Sequence record: PV261924.1
DNA length: 64,000 nucleotides
Direction: 5' to 3' (one strand)
A program made the translations under genes and the position numbers. Shown here one piece after another: positions 43,935 to 53,067 of the stretch. Every line of letters starts with the position of its first letter. Position 1 is the stretch's first letter. Under the pieces are notes generated by a model, which was not told where the DNA came from, made no database searches, and was given only the letters and a program-made list of their open reading frames with translations.

Positions 43935-45227
43935 TCAACAGTTCCATGCTCTAAGGGACTTATTGATTCTGCTATCGGGATCGTTAGCAGTTTTGGAAGA
44001 AGTCAATTTCTTCTTCATACCTTTCATTCTTGCACAGAAAGATGCTCTTCTCTTATTACCAACTTTCTTTGATGGTGCTTTTAAATCAGAGCCAGGGTTA
44101 TCTCTCTCGTAGGACTTACGACCCTTCTCATTTAATCCTCCCTCTTTGTTTTGTCCCTCTTTACGAGTCCAGGCTGCTCCTTCCGAGACTTCCATAGAAC
44201 CATCATCATTAGTGCTTACTTCTTTAGCATTCTCATCCCAGTAGGAACCACCATATGTACAGTCAGATCTAGTTTCCAACTTCTTACACTTTGGACAATA
44301 CTTTAACTCACTCCCTTCTTTTACACCAACATTCAGAACTGCATCTGTAGGTTGGAATGTTGTAAGGTCAAATCTTTGAACCATACAACCTGGATAGACT
44401 TTTGCAAGTGCATCCTGAACTTCATTTCTTGATGGTTTCTTCACTTCAGGGAAGAAGAGCTTCATCATCATATACTTACCTCTCCAGGTAAATGCTACAG
44501 CATAAACATTGCCAGTCTGTGCTGGAACTCTGGTTGACTCCTCAATGGCATCTTTGAGTGGAAGTTCACCTTTGAGTTTTGCAATAACTTGTTCTCTCAC
44601 ACTTCCCTTTGGTACACAGTTAGGGACCATACGGTTACCCTTTTTCTTCATACCTCTTTGTTCGTGGGTTTTCCAACAAGCTTCATCAACAACTTCTACT
44701 TCAATACCATTCTTTCTCATGGCATCGATTTGGAGTTCTGTGAACTCAGGGAGTGCCAAGAACTCTTCTTTCTTGGTTGAACTACCCCAGTTTTTAGCAC
44801 CCTTCTTGCGACACTTTACCAATGCCCCAGAAGCATATGCAGAAGGCCATACGGAATAACGTGACTTGACCTTATGGTAACAAGCATCTTTCTTGCCCGA
44901 ACCCTTACCCTTCTTATCCTCTTCGTTAAAGGTTTCTTCTTTCATTTTCTTCTTAGGTTTGTCGGTTGAAACGTAAGTTGGTTTTGCAGCACCACTCTTT
45001 TGTTGTTGATTGGGGTCTGCAGCCTTCTTTCTTCTTTGAGCAGATTTTCTTTCTGCAGGAGTCATACTCGCTCTTTTAGATGAAGAAACACACTTTGGTG
45101 TACCCTCACCAGGTTCATCACTTGCACAGGTACCACCTGTCACAACATTAACCCAACCACTTTTACCATCTTTAGATTTGGATCCTTTGAACCACTTGTG
45201 GAGATTACCTTCCTGCATTTTGATCAA
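43935..45227 (-). CDS. Modular Lys-rich hypothetical protein, 430 aa
   Basis: Short basic modules (WPSAYASGALVKCRK; CWK...VPNCVP; GGLNEKGR...SFCARM) separated by EE linkers. Confidence 0.8.
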   Translation of the reverse strand: MIKMQEGNLHKWFKGSKSKDGKSGWVNVVTGGTCASDEPGEGTPKCVSSSKRASMTPAERKSAQRRKKAADPNQQQKSGAAKPTYVSTDKPKKKMKEETFNEEDKKGKGSGKKDACYHKVKSRYSVWPSAYASGALVKCRKKGAKNWGSSTKKEEFLALPEFTELQIDAMRKNGIEVEVVDEACWKTHEQRGMKKKGNRMVPNCVPKGSVREQVIAKLKGELPLKDAIEESTRVPAQTGNVYAVAFTWRGKYMMMKLFFPEVKKPSRNEVQDALAKVYPGCMVQRFDLTTFQPTDAVLNVGVKEGSELKYCPKCKKLETRSDCTYGGSYWDENAKEVSTNDDGSMEVSEGAAWTRKEGQNKEGGLNEKGRKSYERDNPGSDLKAPSKKVGNKRRASFCARMKGMKKKLTSSKTANDPDSRINKSLRAWNC

Positions 45228-45243
45228 AGATTTTAATTATTTA

Positions 45244-46191
45244 TCAGATACCGATTGATGTATAGGTATTCAGTTCGAATGCTAATGATTTCCATTCAGA
45301 ACCAAGATACATCTGTACTTTGTTCTCGGTCGTATTAAAAATCAATGCACCTTGAGTTACAGTTAATGCATCTCTCTCGGACGTTGTTAGTGTTGGTGGA
45401 TAGAACTGTGAAGATGCAGTAATGATTCCTGAGACAGTGGTGTTTGATGACACATTTTCAGTACCACCTGCACCAGCAGAAATACCAGTTAAATTAGAAC
45501 CATCACCATAATATGTGTCTGCATATACATTTGCAAACCTAGTACTATTTGTTCCTATATCTACAGTACTATCAGAATTTGCTAAGATATTTCCAGTAAA
45601 TGTTGAACTTCCATTTACTGTAAGACTTGTACCATTTAAGAGTTGAAGACTATCACTTCTGAATCTTGCAGAAATATTTTGTGACCCACCTTTAATGTGA
45701 GCAAATTCAATGATACCATCTTCGGTTCCATTACTGGCATCTAAGATCTTACCAGTAATCTTAGCGTAATTTCTTTCTACACCAGTATCACTTTCACCAG
45801 CAAACTTAATCTGTCCCAGATAATCTCCATCATCTGGGGAAGCACTATTCCTATAAAGTTTGAATTCTGGTGCAGCGGAGCTTCCTGTGTCTGTAGAGAC
45901 AATAGTAACGTTGGATGTTATGTTACCATTAAAATTTACGTTGTTATTAAACGTTGTGATGCCAGATATGTTTATTCTTCCATCATAACTGATACCAGTT
46001 GCACCATAATTTTCAACCCATGGGTTGACGACAGATACTGTGGTTCCAATACCAATACCACCAGTATCGACTTTTAAAAATAATTTACCATCATAAGTAT
46101 TAAGTGCTAATTCACCCGTCTCCAGATTCGAGAGTGCAGGAATCTTTCCCGCTACAGATGAGCGCTTAAACTTTACCTTTGGAGCCGCCAT
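45244..46191 (-). CDS. Fibre-like protein with an Mtd-N-like N-terminus
   Basis: KVKFKRSSVAGKIP....L.TGELALNTYDGKLF; YYGDGSNLTGI; LIFNTTENKVQ.Y.G..W. Confidence 0.75.
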   Translation of the reverse strand: MAAPKVKFKRSSVAGKIPALSNLETGELALNTYDGKLFLKVDTGGIGIGTTVSVVNPWVENYGATGISYDGRINISGITTFNNNVNFNGNITSNVTIVSTDTGSSAAPEFKLYRNSASPDDGDYLGQIKFAGESDTGVERNYAKITGKILDASNGTEDGIIEFAHIKGGSQNISARFRSDSLQLLNGTSLTVNGSSTFTGNILANSDSTVDIGTNSTRFANVYADTYYGDGSNLTGISAGAGGTENVSSNTTVSGIITASSQFYPPTLTTSERDALTVTQGALIFNTTENKVQMYLGSEWKSLAFELNTYTSIGI

Positions 46192-46240
46192 TATAACACC
46201 TGGTATATACCGTAAAACACTTATATAAGTGTATTAATAT

Positions 46241-46477
46241 TTATTCGAACGTTCCACCGTCACCCGCGGTCTTCTTTGTTCTAGTTGTCTTGGGTTTTTG
46301 GTCCACAGACTTTAAAGATTCTATCTGTGCTTCTTGTTCCCTCACCTTTGTTGTCAACGCTTCAACCAAATCAGTCAACTGTCTAATTTTTGCATTAGTT
46401 GCAATTGATTGAGTGAACAAATCATTAGAAGTAGTTTGATATGATGAGATCAAATACTTTATATCATTTTCATTCAT
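46241..46477 (-). CDS. Small coiled-coil protein ending GDGGTFE
   Basis: ORF track. Confidence 0.75.
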   Translation of the reverse strand: MNENDIKYLISSYQTTSNDLFTQSIATNAKIRQLTDLVEALTTKVREQEAQIESLKSVDQKPKTTRTKKTAGDGGTFE

Positions 46478-46479
46478 AG

Positions 46480-46504
46480 AAAAAGAGGGTATTGCTACCC
46501 TCTT
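46480..46504 (-). terminator. Intrinsic terminator
   Basis: AAGAGGGTA-GCAA-TACCCTCTT-TTT. Confidence 0.8.
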
Positions 46505-46525
46505 ATTTATTTTGTTATCTTAGGT

Positions 46526-48295
46526 TCAGAATGTACCACCGTCGATGGTTGCGTTCTCAATCAGAACCTCACCACTCGAACACTTGATAACTTCCTGAAC
46601 TCCACTACATCCACCGATGTGGAGAGAACCTACTTCAAGTGCACCAGCTGCATTTGAAGTCAGAACACCTGAAGATTCAGATACATCGGAAGAAACAACG
46701 ATTCTTGAAGTCGAGTCATCCCAATATACAGCAGCCTTCTTAGCAGAAGACGTGAAGTAGTTGAAGATAACACCGATATCCTTATCGAGGTCAGAAGATG
46801 GTGCAGAACCATCAACCATACCCAGTTCCAAGAGTTGGTCTTCAATGGTTGTTTGTGATGTATTAACCTGAGTGGTTGAACCATTGACAATCAGGTTACC
46901 CTGAACTGTAAGGTTTTGGTTACAAGCAACAGCACCAGTTGAATTGGTGATTGTAATTGCGGTAGTACCATCATTGGCCTGAAGATTAGTAGCCTTTACA
47001 GTTGGAGTTGTAAGTGAAGTTGTGACTGTAACTGCATCGGGGAGTCCGACAGTAAGAGTCTGTCCAGAAGCAGAAGTCTCAATCTCATTTGCGGTACCAG
47101 AAATAGTCAGAGATTGGGAGTCGAGGTCAACAGCACCAGTTCCAGAATCACCAGCAAGGTCAAGATCTTGTGCAGTAATGTTTGTATCAACGTAGTCTTT
47201 TACTGCAGCAGATGTTGGGATGGTAGTATCATTGTCATTAGATGCGATACCCTCAGACTCAATAACAATTGCAGCTGCTGCAAAGTCAGCTACAGCCAAA
47301 TTGGTAATTGAGTTACCAGTACCATCAGCATCAAAAGTCTTATTGGTTAAGGTATCAGATGATGATGCCGTGATGAAAGCAGATGTTGCATTACTATAAT
47401 TTGCAAGATCATTATCAACTACAAAGTCATATTCTCCATTCGTATCATCATATGAAACAGTGATACGAGTTTGTGTACCAGCTGTAATTGCAGCACCAAC
47501 AATATCCTCAATTCTTTCTGCTTGAAGTGTTACTGCACCTGAAGTAACTGAGAAGTCAGTTGCATCGAAAGAAGCAACACCCTTATTTGAAGTTGATGCA
47601 TCTTCACCTGCAACCGTGATAGTAGCACCAGAGTGAGTAACATCAACTCCTTCACCACCAAGGATTGAGAATCCGTGGGATGTTGCAGTCGTGATACCAC
47701 TATCAGTCGTCACATACTTGACAACGTTGTCAGTTAATGAAACGGCACCGCTAGAGACACTGAAATCATTACTGTTGAAAGAAGCAACACCCTTGTTTGA
47801 AGTAGATGCATCTTCTGCAGAAATAGTTACTGTGTCATTAGTAATAGCAGTATCAATGCCTTCACCACCTGTGAAAGTCAGAGTACCACCAGTGCTAAAT
47901 GTGTCAGATCCACTATCACCAGTGATTGTGAAATCGGATGCAGCTGGAGCAGCAAATGACAGTCCACCATTACCATCACTGGTAAGTAAGTCTCCGTTAT
48001 TGCCATCATCTGCTGGCATTGTCAGAGTATAACTTGCTGCCAGAGAATCTGGTGATTTAATGGTTACTGAGTTAGTACCATTGTTTGTGCCTTCGACAAG
48101 CTTTACACCACTACCAGTGGATGCAGTACCTACTGACCAATATCTACCAGAACCAACGAATTGGTTCAATGCAGTAGTAGAATTTACACCAACATACAAA
48201 TCATATGAATCGGTTGTAAAACCAGGCTCACCCGCACGAAGGGCAGGGAGGTTGGCTAATACACCTCTCTTAAACTGAATTACTGGTGCTGCCAC
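46526..48295 (-). CDS. Fibre-like protein with an Mtd-N-like head, internal repeats and an IDGGTF tail
   Basis: IQFKRG...GEPGFTTD...LYVG; EDASTSNKGVASF twice. Confidence 0.8.
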   Translation of the reverse strand: MAAPVIQFKRGVLANLPALRAGEPGFTTDSYDLYVGVNSTTALNQFVGSGRYWSVGTASTGSGVKLVEGTNNGTNSVTIKSPDSLAASYTLTMPADDGNNGDLLTSDGNGGLSFAAPAASDFTITGDSGSDTFSTGGTLTFTGGEGIDTAITNDTVTISAEDASTSNKGVASFNSNDFSVSSGAVSLTDNVVKYVTTDSGITTATSHGFSILGGEGVDVTHSGATITVAGEDASTSNKGVASFDATDFSVTSGAVTLQAERIEDIVGAAITAGTQTRITVSYDDTNGEYDFVVDNDLANYSNATSAFITASSSDTLTNKTFDADGTGNSITNLAVADFAAAAIVIESEGIASNDNDTTIPTSAAVKDYVDTNITAQDLDLAGDSGTGAVDLDSQSLTISGTANEIETSASGQTLTVGLPDAVTVTTSLTTPTVKATNLQANDGTTAITITNSTGAVACNQNLTVQGNLIVNGSTTQVNTSQTTIEDQLLELGMVDGSAPSSDLDKDIGVIFNYFTSSAKKAAVYWDDSTSRIVVSSDVSESSGVLTSNAAGALEVGSLHIGGCSGVQEVIKCSSGEVLIENATIDGGTF

Positions 48296-48348
48296 GAGCT
48301 ACCCTCCTTCTTCGTATAAAGATACACTTTTTATATTATTATTTAGAT

Positions 48349-48588
48349 TTAGAAAGACCCACCGTCATATGATCTTGTGGTGATTTTATCCACCTCAAGG
48401 AGGGATTCAACTTGATCTATAAAAGAATCTTCTAAATCATTATCTTCAGCTGCTGATATTAAAATAGGTGAATTATTGATAATATCCCTCAATCTAAATC
48501 TTCCTGCTGCTGCATCGTATTGAAGTACTGCAGGAATAGTCTTATCCTCTGGATTTAAATCATCAGTATCGATTACTCTTAATGGCAT
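48349..48588 (-). CDS. Small acidic protein ending YDGGSF
   Basis: ORF track; paralogous to 48588..48911. Confidence 0.75.
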   Translation of the reverse strand: MPLRVIDTDDLNPEDKTIPAVLQYDAAAGRFRLRDIINNSPILISAAEDNDLEDSFIDQVESLLEVDKITTRSYDGGSF

Positions 48589-48911
48589 CAGAAGCCACCT
48601 CCATCAATATCTCCACCCTCAATATTTCCAAGGTTTATTTCATCTTCAAGTTCTCTTATAAATGAATCCGCAATGTCACCATCTTCGGCTGCTCTTTCAA
48701 GTAAGACATCTGCTGTAGTCAATTCAAACTTCTTAGTTATATTATTAAAGGTAACAAATAGACCATCTTTTGTATCATCAAGAACACCAAAACTGGTATC
48801 ACCCATATCACCAAGAGTGGTGGGTTGTCTTACGTTTTTAACTAAAGTTTTGGTTGTTTGTTTTTTAGAGATACTTTTGGCACCAGAGGCACCTTTTCTT
48901 ACAGTTGCCAT
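48588..48911 (-). CDS. Small protein ending IDGGGF
   Basis: ORF track; AAEDGDIADSFI motif. Confidence 0.75.
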   Translation of the reverse strand: MATVRKGASGAKSISKKQTTKTLVKNVRQPTTLGDMGDTSFGVLDDTKDGLFVTFNNITKKFELTTADVLLERAAEDGDIADSFIRELEDEINLGNIEGGDIDGGGF

Positions 48912-49246
48912 TAGGTTGAAATACCAGCGGTTACCATAGCAGACCCCTCTACCATTCTTGAAACCGAACCACTACCAGATGTCAATACTACATCATAATA
49001 ATATCTACCTGGTTTCAGATTTACGGTTTTGCCTGCTGTCATTGCAATTGAAACTTCACCAGTCAGTCCAACAATAGAGACAGAAAATGATTCGGATGAT
49101 GGTGAACCTGGATACTTTTTAATTTTAGATACACCAGAGAATCCACTCAAATTAGAAGCACTTCCATCAGATTCAGTAGAAGTAAAACTTTCACTGAAGT
49201 CTGTGCCTTGAGCAATGACTATGTTGACAACAGGAGTAGCGGCCAT
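48911..49246 (-). CDS. Ig-like / BppU-N-like small virion protein
   Basis: NIVIAQGTDF...GEVSIAMTA..T..LKPGRYYYDV...RMVEG. Confidence 0.7.
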   Translation of the reverse strand: MAATPVVNIVIAQGTDFSESFTSTESDGSASNLSGFSGVSKIKKYPGSPSSESFSVSIVGLTGEVSIAMTAGKTVNLKPGRYYYDVVLTSGSGSVSRMVEGSAMVTAGIST

Positions 49247-49257
49247 CTCTTATTTTT

Positions 49258-49686
49258 TTAACTATTTAGATCTTTGTTGACGTTTTTCAACATTTTTTGC
49301 AAATCTGCTGTACTGCCAACAAAAAGTGCATTATTAGTTACAGAAGTAGGTCCCTTCTTATCTTCCTCATTTACATCTTTAAGTTTTTTCTGTAAATCCA
49401 TCAATTTATCAGTTGCGTCAGAGACATTCTTAATCAACTGACCTGCAACTTCATATGCACGAGGCATTTCACTCTCTTGAGCAAGTTCTAAGATACCATT
49501 GATTGCTTCTTGTCCTTTTTCAATGATCGAATATAAATTACCCCTAGTATACTCGTAGTCTTTACGGATATCTTCGTTGGAGTTTTCAAATTTTGTGATT
49601 TGTCTTTCGACATCATCCTTCTTTTCTGTCTTAACTTCAATCGGTTCGACATCAAATGTTTCGTTGAGCTTTTCATACTTATCCAT
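49258..49686 (-). CDS. 16: Terminase small subunit gp16
   Basis: DYEYTRGNLYSIIEKG...PRAYEVAGQLIK...NNALFVGSTADL; follows gp15. Confidence 0.9.
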   Translation of the reverse strand: MDKYEKLNETFDVEPIEVKTEKKDDVERQITKFENSNEDIRKDYEYTRGNLYSIIEKGQEAINGILELAQESEMPRAYEVAGQLIKNVSDATDKLMDLQKKLKDVNEEDKKGPTSVTNNALFVGSTADLQKMLKNVNKDLNS

Positions 49687-49695
49687 GGGTTAACC

Positions 49696-50694
49696 TCAGA
49701 AGACATTACCATCAAACCCGAAATCGTCTCCAAGTTCTATCTGTACATTGTCATTGTTATTAATAGTGTACACCTTGGAACCAAGAACGTGGTTCTGAAG
49801 AGGAGACTTATCTTCAGCTCTCCTTACCACCAACTTATTGTCTGCTACGGTCTCAACATACATCTCTTCTTGGTCAATATAGATGTAAGAACCTTCTGGA
49901 ATTGCTGAACCATTTTCAACATCAATCACAGTTTCATTCATATCAACATTTTCAGCAAGTAATGTTGCTACTACACCATCATAATCTTTGATAGCTCTTG
50001 GTGTGACCTGATAAGTAACATCTCTCTCATACTTATTGGACTTGGATCCAGCAATGTATCCAACAGTAACCTTCTTAATGATATCGTTAGAGACATCCTT
50101 CAGAGGACCGAAGACATAGGTCTTTGCAGTAAATGTGAAAGTATAGAGTAGAGCTCTTCTTGTATCAAAGTTACCTTCATACTCATCAGTCATGTCAATG
50201 TTGTCAAGTACAACGGGGACATTCATAACTTCTTTGAAGTTACCTAAAAACTTGATAGGGAGAGTATAACCAGGTTGGAAATATGGAACAATCTGTTCAA
50301 CAATTTGAAGCATATCATCATTCAGTTTTGTATAAACTGAAAGAGTGATTGTCATATTATATGGTACTGGGAGATATGACTTCCTTTCTTCTGTACCATC
50401 AGCTGATGTTACAACAAACTGCTGTGTTTGAGTAGACTTTCTTGACGGATCGTATGCGAGATTCGTAAATTCAAATGACATCCTGGGAAGTGTCATTTGA
50501 ACTGGATGATTCAAATCAGGATTCTGTTTCAGTCTTGCCAAAAACTTCTGAGTTGGTCCATAAGCAAGAGGAACTTTGATAATACTCTGAGTATCATCAT
50601 TCTCATCCTTATGTTTGATTTGAATACCATTAAAAAGGGAACCAAATCCAATAATTACGGATCTAAAGATCTCGTTGTAAAAATACTCAAACAT
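49696..50694 (-). CDS. 15: Tail sheath stabiliser gp15
   Basis: FGSLFN, VPLAYGP, LPRMSFE, QIVPYFQP. Confidence 0.93.
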   Translation of the reverse strand: MFEYFYNEIFRSVIIGFGSLFNGIQIKHKDENDDTQSIIKVPLAYGPTQKFLARLKQNPDLNHPVQMTLPRMSFEFTNLAYDPSRKSTQTQQFVVTSADGTEERKSYLPVPYNMTITLSVYTKLNDDMLQIVEQIVPYFQPGYTLPIKFLGNFKEVMNVPVVLDNIDMTDEYEGNFDTRRALLYTFTFTAKTYVFGPLKDVSNDIIKKVTVGYIAGSKSNKYERDVTYQVTPRAIKDYDGVVATLLAENVDMNETVIDVENGSAIPEGSYIYIDQEEMYVETVADNKLVVRRAEDKSPLQNHVLGSKVYTINNNDNVQIELGDDFGFDGNVF

Positions 50695-50718
50695 TATTTT
50701 GAAGCACTATACCTTTAT

Positions 50719-52188
50719 TTAGGGCATACCGAATGGATTACTTGATGAGAAGTCTATAATTACATCTGCTTCGGACTCAATTGTATCATTATCAGCATAA
50801 GGTGTGACTAAATCATCGGTATTATAACCACCAATCACGTACTTTGCACCCGACTCTTGACCTGTTAATACTTCACCAATCTGGAAGTATCCATCAACAA
50901 TACTGACTTCCATAATATCATTGACACCATCCCATTCCTTGACTCTTGCTGTTGTACTTGAGATAGAACCAGTTACAACTTCGTTAAAGATAAATGTTCC
51001 ACCAATAGACACTACATTAGATACTGCAGGACCAGATAATGTGACGATTGGGGTAGAATCATAACCCTCACCACCATCAATTACATATACTGCAGTTACG
51101 ATACCAGATGCACTGATCGTCGATACACCAACTGCCTGTCTAGACGGACGTGGGAATGCAGAATCAAATGTATAAGAGGTAGAATCGAATGTGTAGAATG
51201 AGGAATCCCAAAGAGGATAAGCACCTGAGGTATTACCAATAGTAACAGTTGGTGCTGCTGAATAACCAGACCCACCATCTGTAACTCTAATGGATTGAAT
51301 AGAACCTGCTGTAGAGATACCTGTTGTTGCTGCAAATCCAGTACCACCACCTCCATATACGGTAATCATAGGTGGTTCTGTATAACCACAACCAGCATTG
51401 GTTATCAGAATTGTTGGGATAACACCAGACTTACCCTTACAACCTGGATACTCATAGGATACTGACGCAATGCCTGTTGCAGTTACACCACCTGGAGGAG
51501 CTGAAGAGAAACCTACAACTGGTTGGGCAGTATATCCTCTACCCATATTAGAGATTGTAATCTCATTGACTGCACCAGATGCACACCAATCCGCTTCTGC
51601 AGTTGCAGTAGAACCGACACCAATCAGGTTGAGTGTTTGAATATAACCAATTTGTGCGATCTCATCATCAATGGTGTCAACACCTGTGTCGATAACTTCG
51701 TCTTCATATCTGAAGAGTTCACATCTCAATTCATAGACATATGTCTTCTTGAGTTGGTAGAAAGGTTGTTCATGTTCAACGAACTTGATCTCGAATAATC
51801 TATCCCCCAATGGGAAATAAATCAAATCACCTTCCTTTGGTCTGGAGGTCAATTCCATATTAGGAAGACCTTCAGTCAATGGTGCAATATAGTTCTCAAA
51901 TCTCTCTTTTGAGATAATTAATTGAAGATCATCTCTATTTTCAATACCAAATTTTGACAGGATAGACCCCTGTCCAGTATATCCTTCGTAGTTATCAATG
52001 TATGCTTCTAAAGGATATGCATTCTTGAATTCAGATTCAATGACCTCATGAATAATTGTATTTGTCGTGGCATATGTTCTTGGAAGATAATATACTTCCA
52101 CACCATACATCTGCAACTGTTCGTTGACAAGACTCTGGATTAGGTTTTGTTCGGATCTTGTACCGTTAAGAAAGAAGGGATTTAACAT
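50719..52188 (-). CDS. 14: Neck protein gp14 with a large insertion
   Basis: SKFG, RPKEGDLIYFP, FEIKFVEHEQPFYQL, CELFRY; C-terminal DFSSSNPFG. Confidence 0.9.
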   Translation of the reverse strand: MLNPFFLNGTRSEQNLIQSLVNEQLQMYGVEVYYLPRTYATTNTIIHEVIESEFKNAYPLEAYIDNYEGYTGQGSILSKFGIENRDDLQLIISKERFENYIAPLTEGLPNMELTSRPKEGDLIYFPLGDRLFEIKFVEHEQPFYQLKKTYVYELRCELFRYEDEVIDTGVDTIDDEIAQIGYIQTLNLIGVGSTATAEADWCASGAVNEITISNMGRGYTAQPVVGFSSAPPGGVTATGIASVSYEYPGCKGKSGVIPTILITNAGCGYTEPPMITVYGGGGTGFAATTGISTAGSIQSIRVTDGGSGYSAAPTVTIGNTSGAYPLWDSSFYTFDSTSYTFDSAFPRPSRQAVGVSTISASGIVTAVYVIDGGEGYDSTPIVTLSGPAVSNVVSIGGTFIFNEVVTGSISSTTARVKEWDGVNDIMEVSIVDGYFQIGEVLTGQESGAKYVIGGYNTDDLVTPYADNDTIESEADVIIDFSSSNPFGMP

Positions 52189-52194
52189 GTGTCA

Positions 52195-53067
52195 TCACCC
52201 GATCATATCAAGAGGTGGTAACTCATATGTACTCATCATTCTTTCCTGAATCCTATCTAATTCTGCTTGTGCATCATCATATAGTTGTCTACCATTGAAC
52301 TCAATACCACCAGGAAGTTTTACACCCTGGAATTTAATTAAGTTCTGACCCCACTGTCTCTTAATCAGTGCAGTCAGATATGGTTTAATGAATGAATCGT
52401 TGTAAATTCTTGCATAATCATTAGGATCATTCATTGCCCAACAATCAAGAATTAAAAACTCACCAGCATTAAGATCACTGTAATCAACATCGATATATAA
52501 TCGATCAGTTCTTTGATTGAATCGAATCTGTTTATGTGTGTTTAGAATAAAGTTAATTGTCTCAAGGTAACCCATTGTCATTGAGTATGACAACAGATCA
52601 AAACCACCAGCACCCCAACCATTCAATCCGATAAAATCATTCAACATATACTGGTATCTTACGTTGAACATACCAGCACCCATTCCTGCAGGATATTGGT
52701 AGATCTTATTAACACCAATAATTGATGGAGGAATCTGAATGTAATTACTGTTCTGATAATAAGTGAACGTGGTTGCAGTACCAGCAACACTCGCAGATGC
52801 TGTTATTGATGTGATACCAGTGGTTCCATTTTCATTCTGAGGTGCACCAGGTGGTCTTGCTCTACCTCTCTTGATATCCTCCTCGGTAAGTTCGTACTTC
52901 AAATAAACCTTAGTGACACCATCAAAGTGTCTCTCCTGGAAATACTGAATGGCATCATCTACAAGATCTTCAATTTGTTCATCTGCAACGTTGATCTCCA
53001 ATACTGGAGCACCCAATTGTCTTAAACAATAATCAATCAGTTCTTGTCTAGTACTAGGCTGTGCCAT
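52195..53067 (-). CDS. 13: Neck protein gp13
   Basis: YCLRQLGAPVLEINV, KRQWGQNL.KF.GV.LPGG. Confidence 0.93.
   Translation of the reverse strand: MAQPSTRQELIDYCLRQLGAPVLEINVADEQIEDLVDDAIQYFQERHFDGVTKVYLKYELTEEDIKRGRARPPGAPQNENGTTGITSITASASVAGTATTFTYYQNSNYIQIPPSIIGVNKIYQYPAGMGAGMFNVRYQYMLNDFIGLNGWGAGGFDLLSYSMTMGYLETINFILNTHKQIRFNQRTDRLYIDVDYSDLNAGEFLILDCWAMNDPNDYARIYNDSFIKPYLTALIKRQWGQNLIKFQGVKLPGGIEFNGRQLYDDAQAELDRIQERMMSTYELPPLDMIG

Follow-up and report, generated by a model that had tools for sequence, protein, structure and literature searches.

A shared C-terminal D-[G/A]-G-x-F tag in a fibre module of T4-like cyanophages, and its possible docking to an LtfC-type Ig-like protein

In phage DT57C, a dodecameric collar of LtfC anchors the fibre protein LtfA, whose short terminal strands extend the β-sheets of LtfC (PMC10713586). 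The T5 protein p132 forms the same kind of collar and has been linked to BppU-N (PMC10038345), and in Bas63 a dodecameric immunoglobulin (Ig)-like collar on the connector carries the whiskers (PMC12609058). Both the LtfC/p132/BppU-N anchoring family and the fastening of a fibre by a terminal strand, as in DT57C, are already known. Here we analyse a 64,000-nucleotide stretch of sequence record PV261924.1 (the window), in which a gene for an LtfC-like protein of 111 residues is followed by four consecutive genes whose products end in the same short motif, D-G-G-x-F (the tag). Bases 45200-49300 of the window are 100% identical to Synechococcus phage RN05-S (genome size 206.5 kb; subtracting 124,000 from an RN05-S coordinate gives the window coordinate), 99.8-100% identical to RB11-B and S-B43, and ~89% identical to S-B05. 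All four are T4-like cyanomyoviruses (Kyanoviridae) with Synechococcus MW02 as isolation host.

The first-pass annotation of this DNA had reported the shared motif, and the four minus-strand open reading frames (ORFs) do have the C-termini it listed: IDGGGF (107 residues), YDGGSF (79 residues), IDGGTF (589 residues, fibre A) and GDGGTFE (78 residues). They are the only ORFs ending in DGGx[FYW] among the 354 six-frame ORFs of at least 40 residues in the window, and again the only ones among the 1,210 such ORFs in the whole RN05-S genome. From amino-acid frequencies ~0.13 tagged ORFs would be expected, against four observed, all adjacent. The five tag codons differ from gene to gene, and the DNA flanking the tags and downstream of them is unrelated; only the 107-residue gene overlaps the next start codon, the other three genes being followed by spacers of 48-53 nucleotides. 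Different codons and unrelated flanks argue that the tag is neither a DNA repeat nor a by-product of ribosome-binding sites, and, taken with its rarity across the genome, that the motif is maintained at the protein level. Across the families of the module the tag has the general form [I/V/L]-D-[G/A]-G-x-F-COOH, and the three families that carry it, unrelated in sequence, have only their last 5-8 residues in common.

The same annotation had described the four products as otherwise different proteins, which is wrong for the 107- and 79-residue proteins: they are paralogues of one family, hereafter the S family. Aligned directly with each other they match only weakly; once 24 counterparts from metagenomic cyanophage contigs are added, a single alignment emerges that has a conserved core and a terminal tag, and the resulting profile matches both window proteins (E = 1e-19 and 1.5e-15). 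The family surfaced only with an alignment of such locus-derived members. A word-indexed search with the 79-residue protein alone found only relatives at ≥87% identity. In tblastn searches of cultured phages, the three small proteins matched nothing beyond the S-B43/RN05-S/RB11-B/S-B05 clade, and a family member of the DAG type matched DSL-LC02 alone. With the family alignment, the word-indexed search returned 663 proteins at E ≤ 1e-3. Among the best 120 of these, with a mean column identity of 35%, 118 end exactly in D-[A/G]-G-x-[F/W]. Counted back from the last residue (position 0), position -7 is I in 106 and -6 is D in 117; -5 is L, V, I, F or M; -4 is D in 118, -3 is A in 90 and G in 28, -2 is G in 118, and the last residue is F in 115 and W in 3. 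No Pfam domain was found on any of these 120 matches or on the two window members, cluster look-ups gave no names, and a Protein Data Bank (PDB) sequence search with the family returned nothing useful and no whisker-like match.

With an exhaustive profile search (E ≤ 1e-3) the S family grew to 1,225 representative clusters. Within the top 150 representatives, 64 of 70 small proteins keep the tag, as do all 14 proteins of 140-300 residues; the 62 proteins longer than 300 residues have only the β-hairpin of the family in common, as 4-21 repeats, and two of them carry the tag. In one long hairpin-repeat protein of 1,234 residues (P0227), encoded on an unrelated 50-kb contig (L110:6001-9705), a terminal IDGGSY comes straight after a Pfam Fibritin_C foldon; no LtfC-like gene was found in its contig context. 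The small proteins consist of a β-hairpin, two helices, an acidic run and the terminal D-[G/A/S]-G-x-F, the tail being strongly acidic with a D-x-D-x-D-type run before the tag. In the AlphaFold2 (AF2) model of the 107-residue protein, built from 115 sequences, the mean predicted local distance difference test score (pLDDT) is 66.8. The N-terminus is disordered, a β-hairpin (residues 51-66) and two helices (67-76 and 82-91) are predicted, and the tail (92-107) has low confidence; Foldseek with this low-confidence model returned only noise. An end that is invariant yet unstructured in the prediction looks like a linear interaction motif. It persists where the helices of the small protein are gone, in P-HM1/2 and P-SSM2.

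Fibre A combines a conserved head, a variable middle and a conserved, tagged end. Its residues 6-36 match Pfam Mtd_N (PF18454; 35.1 bits, cut-off 26.3) and residues 374-568 match PHROG fibre and baseplate families, while a PDB sequence search returned nothing useful and no whisker-like match. Relatives range from 371 to 925 residues, and the mean share of the commonest residue is 0.72 over the first 70 residues, 0.34 in the middle and 0.67 over the last 70. In 27 fibre A tails, D at -4, G at -2 and F at 0 occur in 27 of 27 each, with G (18), A (7) or C (2) at -3. Near invariance at the extreme C-terminus, while the rest diverges, supports the view that these sequences carry a conserved functional terminal peptide. 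The annotation had further noticed that fibre A and the untagged 315-residue protein (fibre B) have matching N-terminal heads, and they align at 40% identity over 43 residues (E = 2e-6). Fibre B has no Pfam match at E ≤ 0.1 and so falls below Mtd_N; its first ~45 residues match the N-termini of PHROG tail-fibre families. Across contigs its head takes the form MA.P.I.IKRS, and its S-B05 homologue has 517 residues with the same two ends.

Two further observations concern the make-up of fibre A. On one contig (L096:4434-8771) it is encoded by two genes, a 985-residue protein with the Mtd_N head and a 454-residue protein with the C-terminal block and tag. In the window, ~310 nucleotides of its middle (47518-47827) have 73% DNA identity to tail-fibre genes of Methylophilales phages Melnitz, and a shorter stretch matches Pelagibacter phage HTVC103P, a sign that phages with unrelated marine hosts may have exchanged parts of their fibres.

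The 111-residue protein at the start of the module was correctly called Ig-like: AF2 predicts an all-β, seven-strand sandwich (pLDDT 89.4). It matches phrog_3304, 'L-shaped tail fiber protein assembly' (E = 2e-24), and phrog_1084 (E = 4e-24). RefSeq uses the same label for its homologues in many cyanomyoviruses, and a homologue occurs in 101 phage records. A PDB sequence search with the single sequence gave nothing useful; with a profile of homologues, the two best PDB sequences were DT57C LtfC (8hqz, E = 0.002) and T5 p132 (7qg9, E = 0.012). The top Foldseek match of the model is the Bas63 connector (9mt4 chains G/H, E = 3e-5, TM 0.64-0.69), its other PDB neighbours include a marine siphophage portal-adaptor complex and the 80alpha and Douge baseplates, and its structural neighbours in BFVD include BppU-N proteins. 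The 111-residue protein itself has no Pfam match at E ≤ 0.1, while some homologues with 68-69% identity to it have a precomputed PF23926 assignment; a relative in which the Ig domain is fused to the small domain scores 21.3 bits against the PF23926 cut-off of 27. Judged by profile and predicted fold, the protein appears to be an anchoring domain of the LtfC/p132/BppU-N type, a member or near member of a known family.

Tagged proteins are, with few exceptions, encoded next to the Ig-like protein. The loci examined came from 80 contigs around the small terminase gene, 18 contigs retrieved by the family profile, and a number of long metagenomic contigs. An S-family ORF occurs in 39 of the loci, and each of these has an LtfC-like ORF as well, either fused to it or directly upstream, within 1.5 kb. 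Of the 60 S-family ORFs in these loci 58 are tagged (37 of 38 clusters at ~80% identity). In three loci (L100, L105 and L108) an Ig domain, a complete S-family core and the tag lie in one polypeptide, and fusions of the Ig and small domains that keep the tag make up at least seven representative clusters with mutual identity ≤50%. One 192-residue fusion (L105:6345-6923) ends with two tags in tandem (..DAGNF then ADSGEF). Since fusions usually join proteins that work in contact, we infer that these partners do so too.

The module recurs in a constant order: a ~110-residue Ig-like protein, one to three small tailed proteins, fibre A, a coiled coil of 57-89 residues and, usually, fibre B. In 22 of 22 loci fibre A has a coiled-coil homologue downstream, which in 16 is followed by fibre B. 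The window's 78-residue version, in which the tag comes after a Lys-rich stretch, has only sub-threshold coiled-coil matches in Pfam. The first 80 contigs contain 29 strictly tagged ORFs, all on the coding strand. Of these, 28 lie downstream of the terminase gene, the other being the C-terminus of gp15 in L021 (...FDGGFF). In complete loci, tailed small proteins and tailed fibre A are present together or absent together, and the residue at -3 (G or A) agrees between them genome by genome (Fisher p = 0.004 over 21 lineages, uncorrected for phylogeny). Reduced versions are present in cultured model phages. P-HM1 and P-HM2 have an LtfC-like gene, a 73-residue hairpin protein (...NGGSF, the tag in P-HM2 directly following the hairpin), a fibre of 559/561 residues (...IDGGTF) and a 68-residue protein (...DDF); P-SSM2 has a 75-residue protein (...INGGNF), a 527-residue fibre (...LDGGTF) and a 72-residue coiled coil. 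In P-HM2 all four homologues (PHM2_090-093) belong to the 'Late (E)' transcript class, with the structural genes (PMC5082946 supplement).

In RN05-S and most contigs the module follows gp16, the small terminase gene. In DSL-LC02 and P-SSM2 it lies directly before gp13, between that gene and a small 'virion structural protein' (T4-GC112). Contigs lacking the module (L026, L043, L070, L073, L082 and others) have a 126-131-residue LtfC-like paralogue directly before gp13, as at L026:5094-5480, downstream of the same small 'virion structural protein'. Cyanomyoviruses have no wac and no recognisable homologues of T4 gp10, 11, 12, 34, 35 and 37; S-PM2 has no collar, and another isolate has been reported with whiskers (PMC2984593). 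These patchy reports of collars and whiskers match the patchy distribution of the module. The PDB holds no cyanomyovirus neck structure, and in it gp14 and gp15 of the window match only T4.

We read the tag as a docking element of an LtfC-anchored accessory-fibre module. It would consist of a short strand, a Gly turn and a terminal Phe, and would act as a common docking peptide that fastens different components into one assembly, the strand with its Phe plug joining each of them to a common acceptor. On our analysis the likeliest socket would be the Ig-like protein, taken as ring-forming, with the tag adding a strand to its β-sheet or plugging a pocket, much as LtfA engages the LtfC collar in DT57C. 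The product would be a collar- or whisker-type set of accessory fibres, most likely placed at the neck because the module adjoins the neck genes, which is an argument from synteny only. As a whole this reading is tentative, its chances falling a little short of even. The first-pass annotation had proposed a terminal docking peptide, bound either by the Mtd_N-like heads or by the Ig-like neighbour, in a plug-in system for swappable fibres. The peptide itself has gained from its conservation, its confinement to one fibre module and the low AF2 confidence over the last 16 residues of the 107-residue protein. Of the two sockets, the Ig-like neighbour has gained real support from its anchoring-domain type, its presence in all 39 loci retrieved and its fusions, whereas the heads have adjacency only; for swapping, the one hint is that closely related Ig-like genes have entirely different partners. 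With the tag and the Ig-like neighbour looking right and the heads weaker, the plug-in idea is partly supported. A more general version, in which the tag is an 'address label' by which an LtfC-like Ig ring at the neck accepts several unrelated proteins of marine T4-like phages, namely adaptors, a fibre and a coiled coil, and the fibres can be exchanged by recombination, is rather unlikely in our estimate; if true, it would amount to a plug-in rack on which accessory fibres are exchanged without changing the socket.

Several observations weigh against docking to the Ig-like protein at the neck. The fibres of T5 and DT57C dock by their N-termini; the tag studied here is at the C-terminus, and the N-terminus of fibre A has an attachment head of the conventional kind. 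No S-family gene comes after the LtfC-like genes of L031 and L041, which are 68-69% identical to that of the window, and the next gene in L031 encodes an entirely different, untagged protein of 1,167 residues. As more distant LtfC-like genes keep the tailed module, the Ig-like protein is not specialised for the tag. In P-SSM2 the LtfC-like copies are ~70 kb from the tailed genes. The coiled-coil protein carries a strict tag in only 5 of 22 lineages, with an acidic and aromatic end in 17. The P-HM1/2 module has VrlC/GC112 on one side and a gp7-like baseplate gene on the other, which makes a baseplate location possible as well. Finally, the three published cyanomyovirus virion proteomes (S-SM1, S-PM2 and Syn9) come from phages without these gene clusters, and the only description listed for T4-GC 211 and 508-510 is 'hypothetical'.

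The genomic position of the module is occupied by other genes elsewhere. Alternative partners after an LtfC-like gene are found at L031:10817-14320, L009:10785-11090 and, in L012, in the ORF after 900-1235; others lie directly after TerS, in L026, L043 and L082. They start with short acidic/aromatic motifs, either MDNLGDFF... or repeated ..DLPSI[N/D][D/E].., and one of 322 residues (L012) ends in IDYGEFE. Such proteins may use docking peptides of another kind on the same mount.

The tag might instead be bound by the trimeric Mtd_N-type heads, so that the tail of fibre A enters the head of fibre B to give a jointed, two-segment fibre, with the small tailed proteins capping or bridging heads as gp35/gp36 do at the knee of the T4 long fibre. 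The only two head-bearing ORFs in the RN05-S genome are indeed the two fibres of the module, beside the only four tags, and the frequent succession of coiled-coil gene and fibre B would suit such a joint, as would the separate head-bearing and tail-bearing halves of fibre A in L096. The head of fibre B resembles, in PHROG families, the N-termini of T4-type distal long-fibre subunits, which join another fibre protein. Yet fibre A is tagged without a nearby fibre B in DSL-LC02, L085, L105, P-HM1/2 and P-SSM2, each module has 3-5 tags for 1-2 heads, and no fusion of a head with the small domain appears among the top representatives, although fusions of the Ig and small domains recur. PHROG also places such heads on tail-fibre families of other phage groups, and nothing ties those to the tag. 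Literature searches on T4 long-fibre joints and on Mtd_N yielded nothing relevant, and we consider binding by the heads improbable.

The second alternative, to which we give no better prospects, takes the tag for the end of a foldon-like cap by which each protein folds or trimerises at its own C-terminus; fibrous proteins would have exchanged this common nucleus. This would account for the conservation of the last ~70 residues of fibre A as a block, for the S-family β-hairpin serving as a repeat unit (4-21 copies) in large fibre-like proteins, for the foldon that immediately precedes IDGGSY in P0227, and for the P-HM2 tag directly after the hairpin. It fits poorly with the 78-residue protein, in which the tag sits on a Lys-rich stretch past the coiled coil and outside any domain, and with the tail of the 107-residue protein, which AF2 leaves unstructured despite the 115-sequence alignment. 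The rarity of the tag among large hairpin-repeat proteins (2 of 62) and the likeness of three unrelated families in only their last 5-8 residues also argue against a shared cap.

Less probable again is a tag that is bound only in passing, whether by an assembly chaperone or by a factor for processing or quality control, or one that forms a homotypic or metal-bridged acidic cluster with other tags. The S-family tail is strongly acidic, and a self-associating element would also place the same motif on all partners. The small coiled-coil protein, always found with the fibre, is reminiscent of small coiled-coil fibre chaperones such as T4 gp57A. However, PHROG and Pfam scans detected no chaperone or protease family in the module. 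Its synteny is also strict and the Ig fusions recur, which speaks for partners joined in a stable structure. Coincidence, or a DNA-level by-product at gene ends, can be discounted: GGAGGT within the tag codons of the 107-residue gene does sit just upstream of the overlapping start of the 79-residue gene, but a repeat, a ribosome-binding site or a recombination box is ruled out by the spacers behind the other three genes, the differing codons, the unrelated flanks, the excess of four adjacent tags over ~0.13 expected, and the retention of the motif across proteins at 20-40% identity.

All genes of the region are on the minus strand (Table 1). In the direction of transcription gp13, gp14 and gp15 (neck and tail terminator) come first, then gp16; the proteins of 111, 107, 79, 589 and 78 residues follow in that order, and then the 315-residue fibre B. 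Beyond it come a DUF6321 protein, a 105-residue protein, a 519-residue structural protein and gp17 (large terminase). The DUF6321 domain is C-terminal in a Lys-rich protein of 430 residues (43935-45227), between fibre B and the 519-residue structural protein; in contigs without the module, DUF6321-type proteins come directly after the small terminase gene. Boxes of the sequence NATAAATA (46511, 46245 and 45245, minus strand), 18-54 nucleotides upstream of the 78-residue gene, fibre B and the DUF6321 gene, resemble T4-type late promoters.

Table 1. Features of the tagged module and of its upstream neighbours, in window coordinates
Feature	Coordinates	Strand	Basis or remark
111-residue LtfC/p132/BppU-N-like Ig β-sandwich protein; first gene of the module, candidate collar/socket	48911..49246	-	PHROG, PDB profile, AF2, Foldseek
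107-residue small tailed protein (S family, paralogue 1)	48588..48911	-	ends IDGGGF; DGGGF codons 48591-48605
79-residue small tailed protein (S family, paralogue 2)	48349..48588	-	ends YDGGSF; DGGSF codons 48352-48366
589-residue fibre A: Mtd_N head, variable middle, conserved C-terminal ~70 residues	46526..48295	-	ends IDGGTF; DGGTF codons 46529-46543
Bidirectional terminator-like hairpin, between fibre A and the 78-residue gene	46483..46504	none	
78-residue coiled-coil-like protein with basic linker	46241..46477	-	ends GDGGTFE; DGGTF codons 46247-46261, then one Glu
315-residue fibre B: Mtd_N-like head, no tag	45244..46191	-	usual last module member
gp16, small terminase subunit, immediately upstream of the module	49258..49686	-	phrog_445 E = 1.4e-56; RN05-S annotation
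gp15 (49696-50694), gp14 (50719-52188) and gp13 (52195-53067), neck and terminator	49696..53067	-	

The neck proteins have features of their own. The gp15 end FGFDGNVF was considered as a fifth tag and set aside, its form across contigs not tracking the presence of the module; in related contigs gp15 ends in FGF[D/S/N]G plus 1-3 further residues, often with a final Phe. The protein is ~80 residues longer than T4 gp15, its PDB match covering residues 1-251 only. gp14 has 489 residues against 256 in T4 and matches T4 gp14 over residues 2-170 only; its residues ~188-323 match PHROG families of fibre and baseplate type, which suggests that this neck protein has an extra fibre-like domain.

T4-like cyanophages are among the most abundant viruses of the sea, but roles have been assigned to only a minority of their fibre and neck accessories. 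The analysis names and delimits a conserved, late-expressed module, found also in the model phages P-SSM2 and P-HM1/2, defines a large Pfam-less family of small proteins, and offers a checkable hypothesis in which the parts would be joined by a common terminal tag and an Ig anchor of the LtfC type. Should the tag be a common plug, this would account for the exchange of fibres with unrelated middles (371-925 residues in all) on a constant mount, and the tag would also be a useful sequence marker for annotating accessory fibres in metagenomes. In the libraries, structures and literature searched we found no description of a common C-terminal D-[G/A]-G-x-F tag on several proteins of a module, of the Pfam-less small tailed family, or of such a module beside the neck genes of a T4-like cyanophage.

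Among known systems, the LtfC (p132)-LtfA/pb1 pairs of T5 and DT57C resemble this locus in having a small stand-alone gene for an Ig-like β-sandwich beside a fibre gene; among the carriers of the module, P-SSM2 departs from this. The 111-residue protein appears to be a relative of LtfC/p132 in sequence and fold, and we propose for the tag the DT57C way of fastening, by a terminal strand. The T5-like phages, however, are siphoviruses with the collar at the tail tip, and their fibre docks by its N-terminus, while here the tag is C-terminal, occurs in three protein families and belongs to a T4-like myovirus with the genes beside those of the neck; a p140-like partner was not identified. The Felixounavirus Bas63, whose kind of collar complex is also represented by Sf14, podophage GP4 and XM1 gp40, provides the best structural match of the 111-residue model (to chains, not to named proteins) and has a dodecameric Ig-like ring with accessory fibres on a myovirus neck. 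The likeness is at the level of the fold only (10-12% identity), and the Bas63 whiskers are strung on an N-terminal 'rope' of the collar protein, unlike the arrangement proposed here. We know of no relative of the Bas63 whisker protein here and of no D-G-G-x-F tag in that phage.

Fibritin (wac) of T4 is likewise an accessory fibre set of a T4-type neck, with its gene directly upstream of gp13, which is where the module lies in DSL-LC02 and P-SSM2, and fibre A has the conserved ends and variable-length middle of a fibritin. In contrast, the module proteins of the window show no Fibritin_C or coiled-coil fibritin signature, the window module follows gp16 rather than preceding gp13, and it has several components, including the Ig-like protein. 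BppU-N, in the baseplates of TP901-1-type siphophages, has the same Ig-like anchoring fold (from the BFVD matches) but forms the N-terminus of a larger baseplate protein in phages of Gram-positive hosts; to our knowledge no terminal tag system accompanies it. Chaperone-usher pili are an analogy only, with no homology: a short terminal strand, hydrophobic at alternating residues, links one Ig-like subunit to the next, but in pilins that strand is N-terminal and completes an incomplete fold, whereas the predicted seven-strand sandwich of the 111-residue protein looks complete. Were the tag nonetheless a general address label for an LtfC-like ring, it would be a phage counterpart of donor-strand assembly, and the module a functional replacement for the missing wac collar and whiskers.

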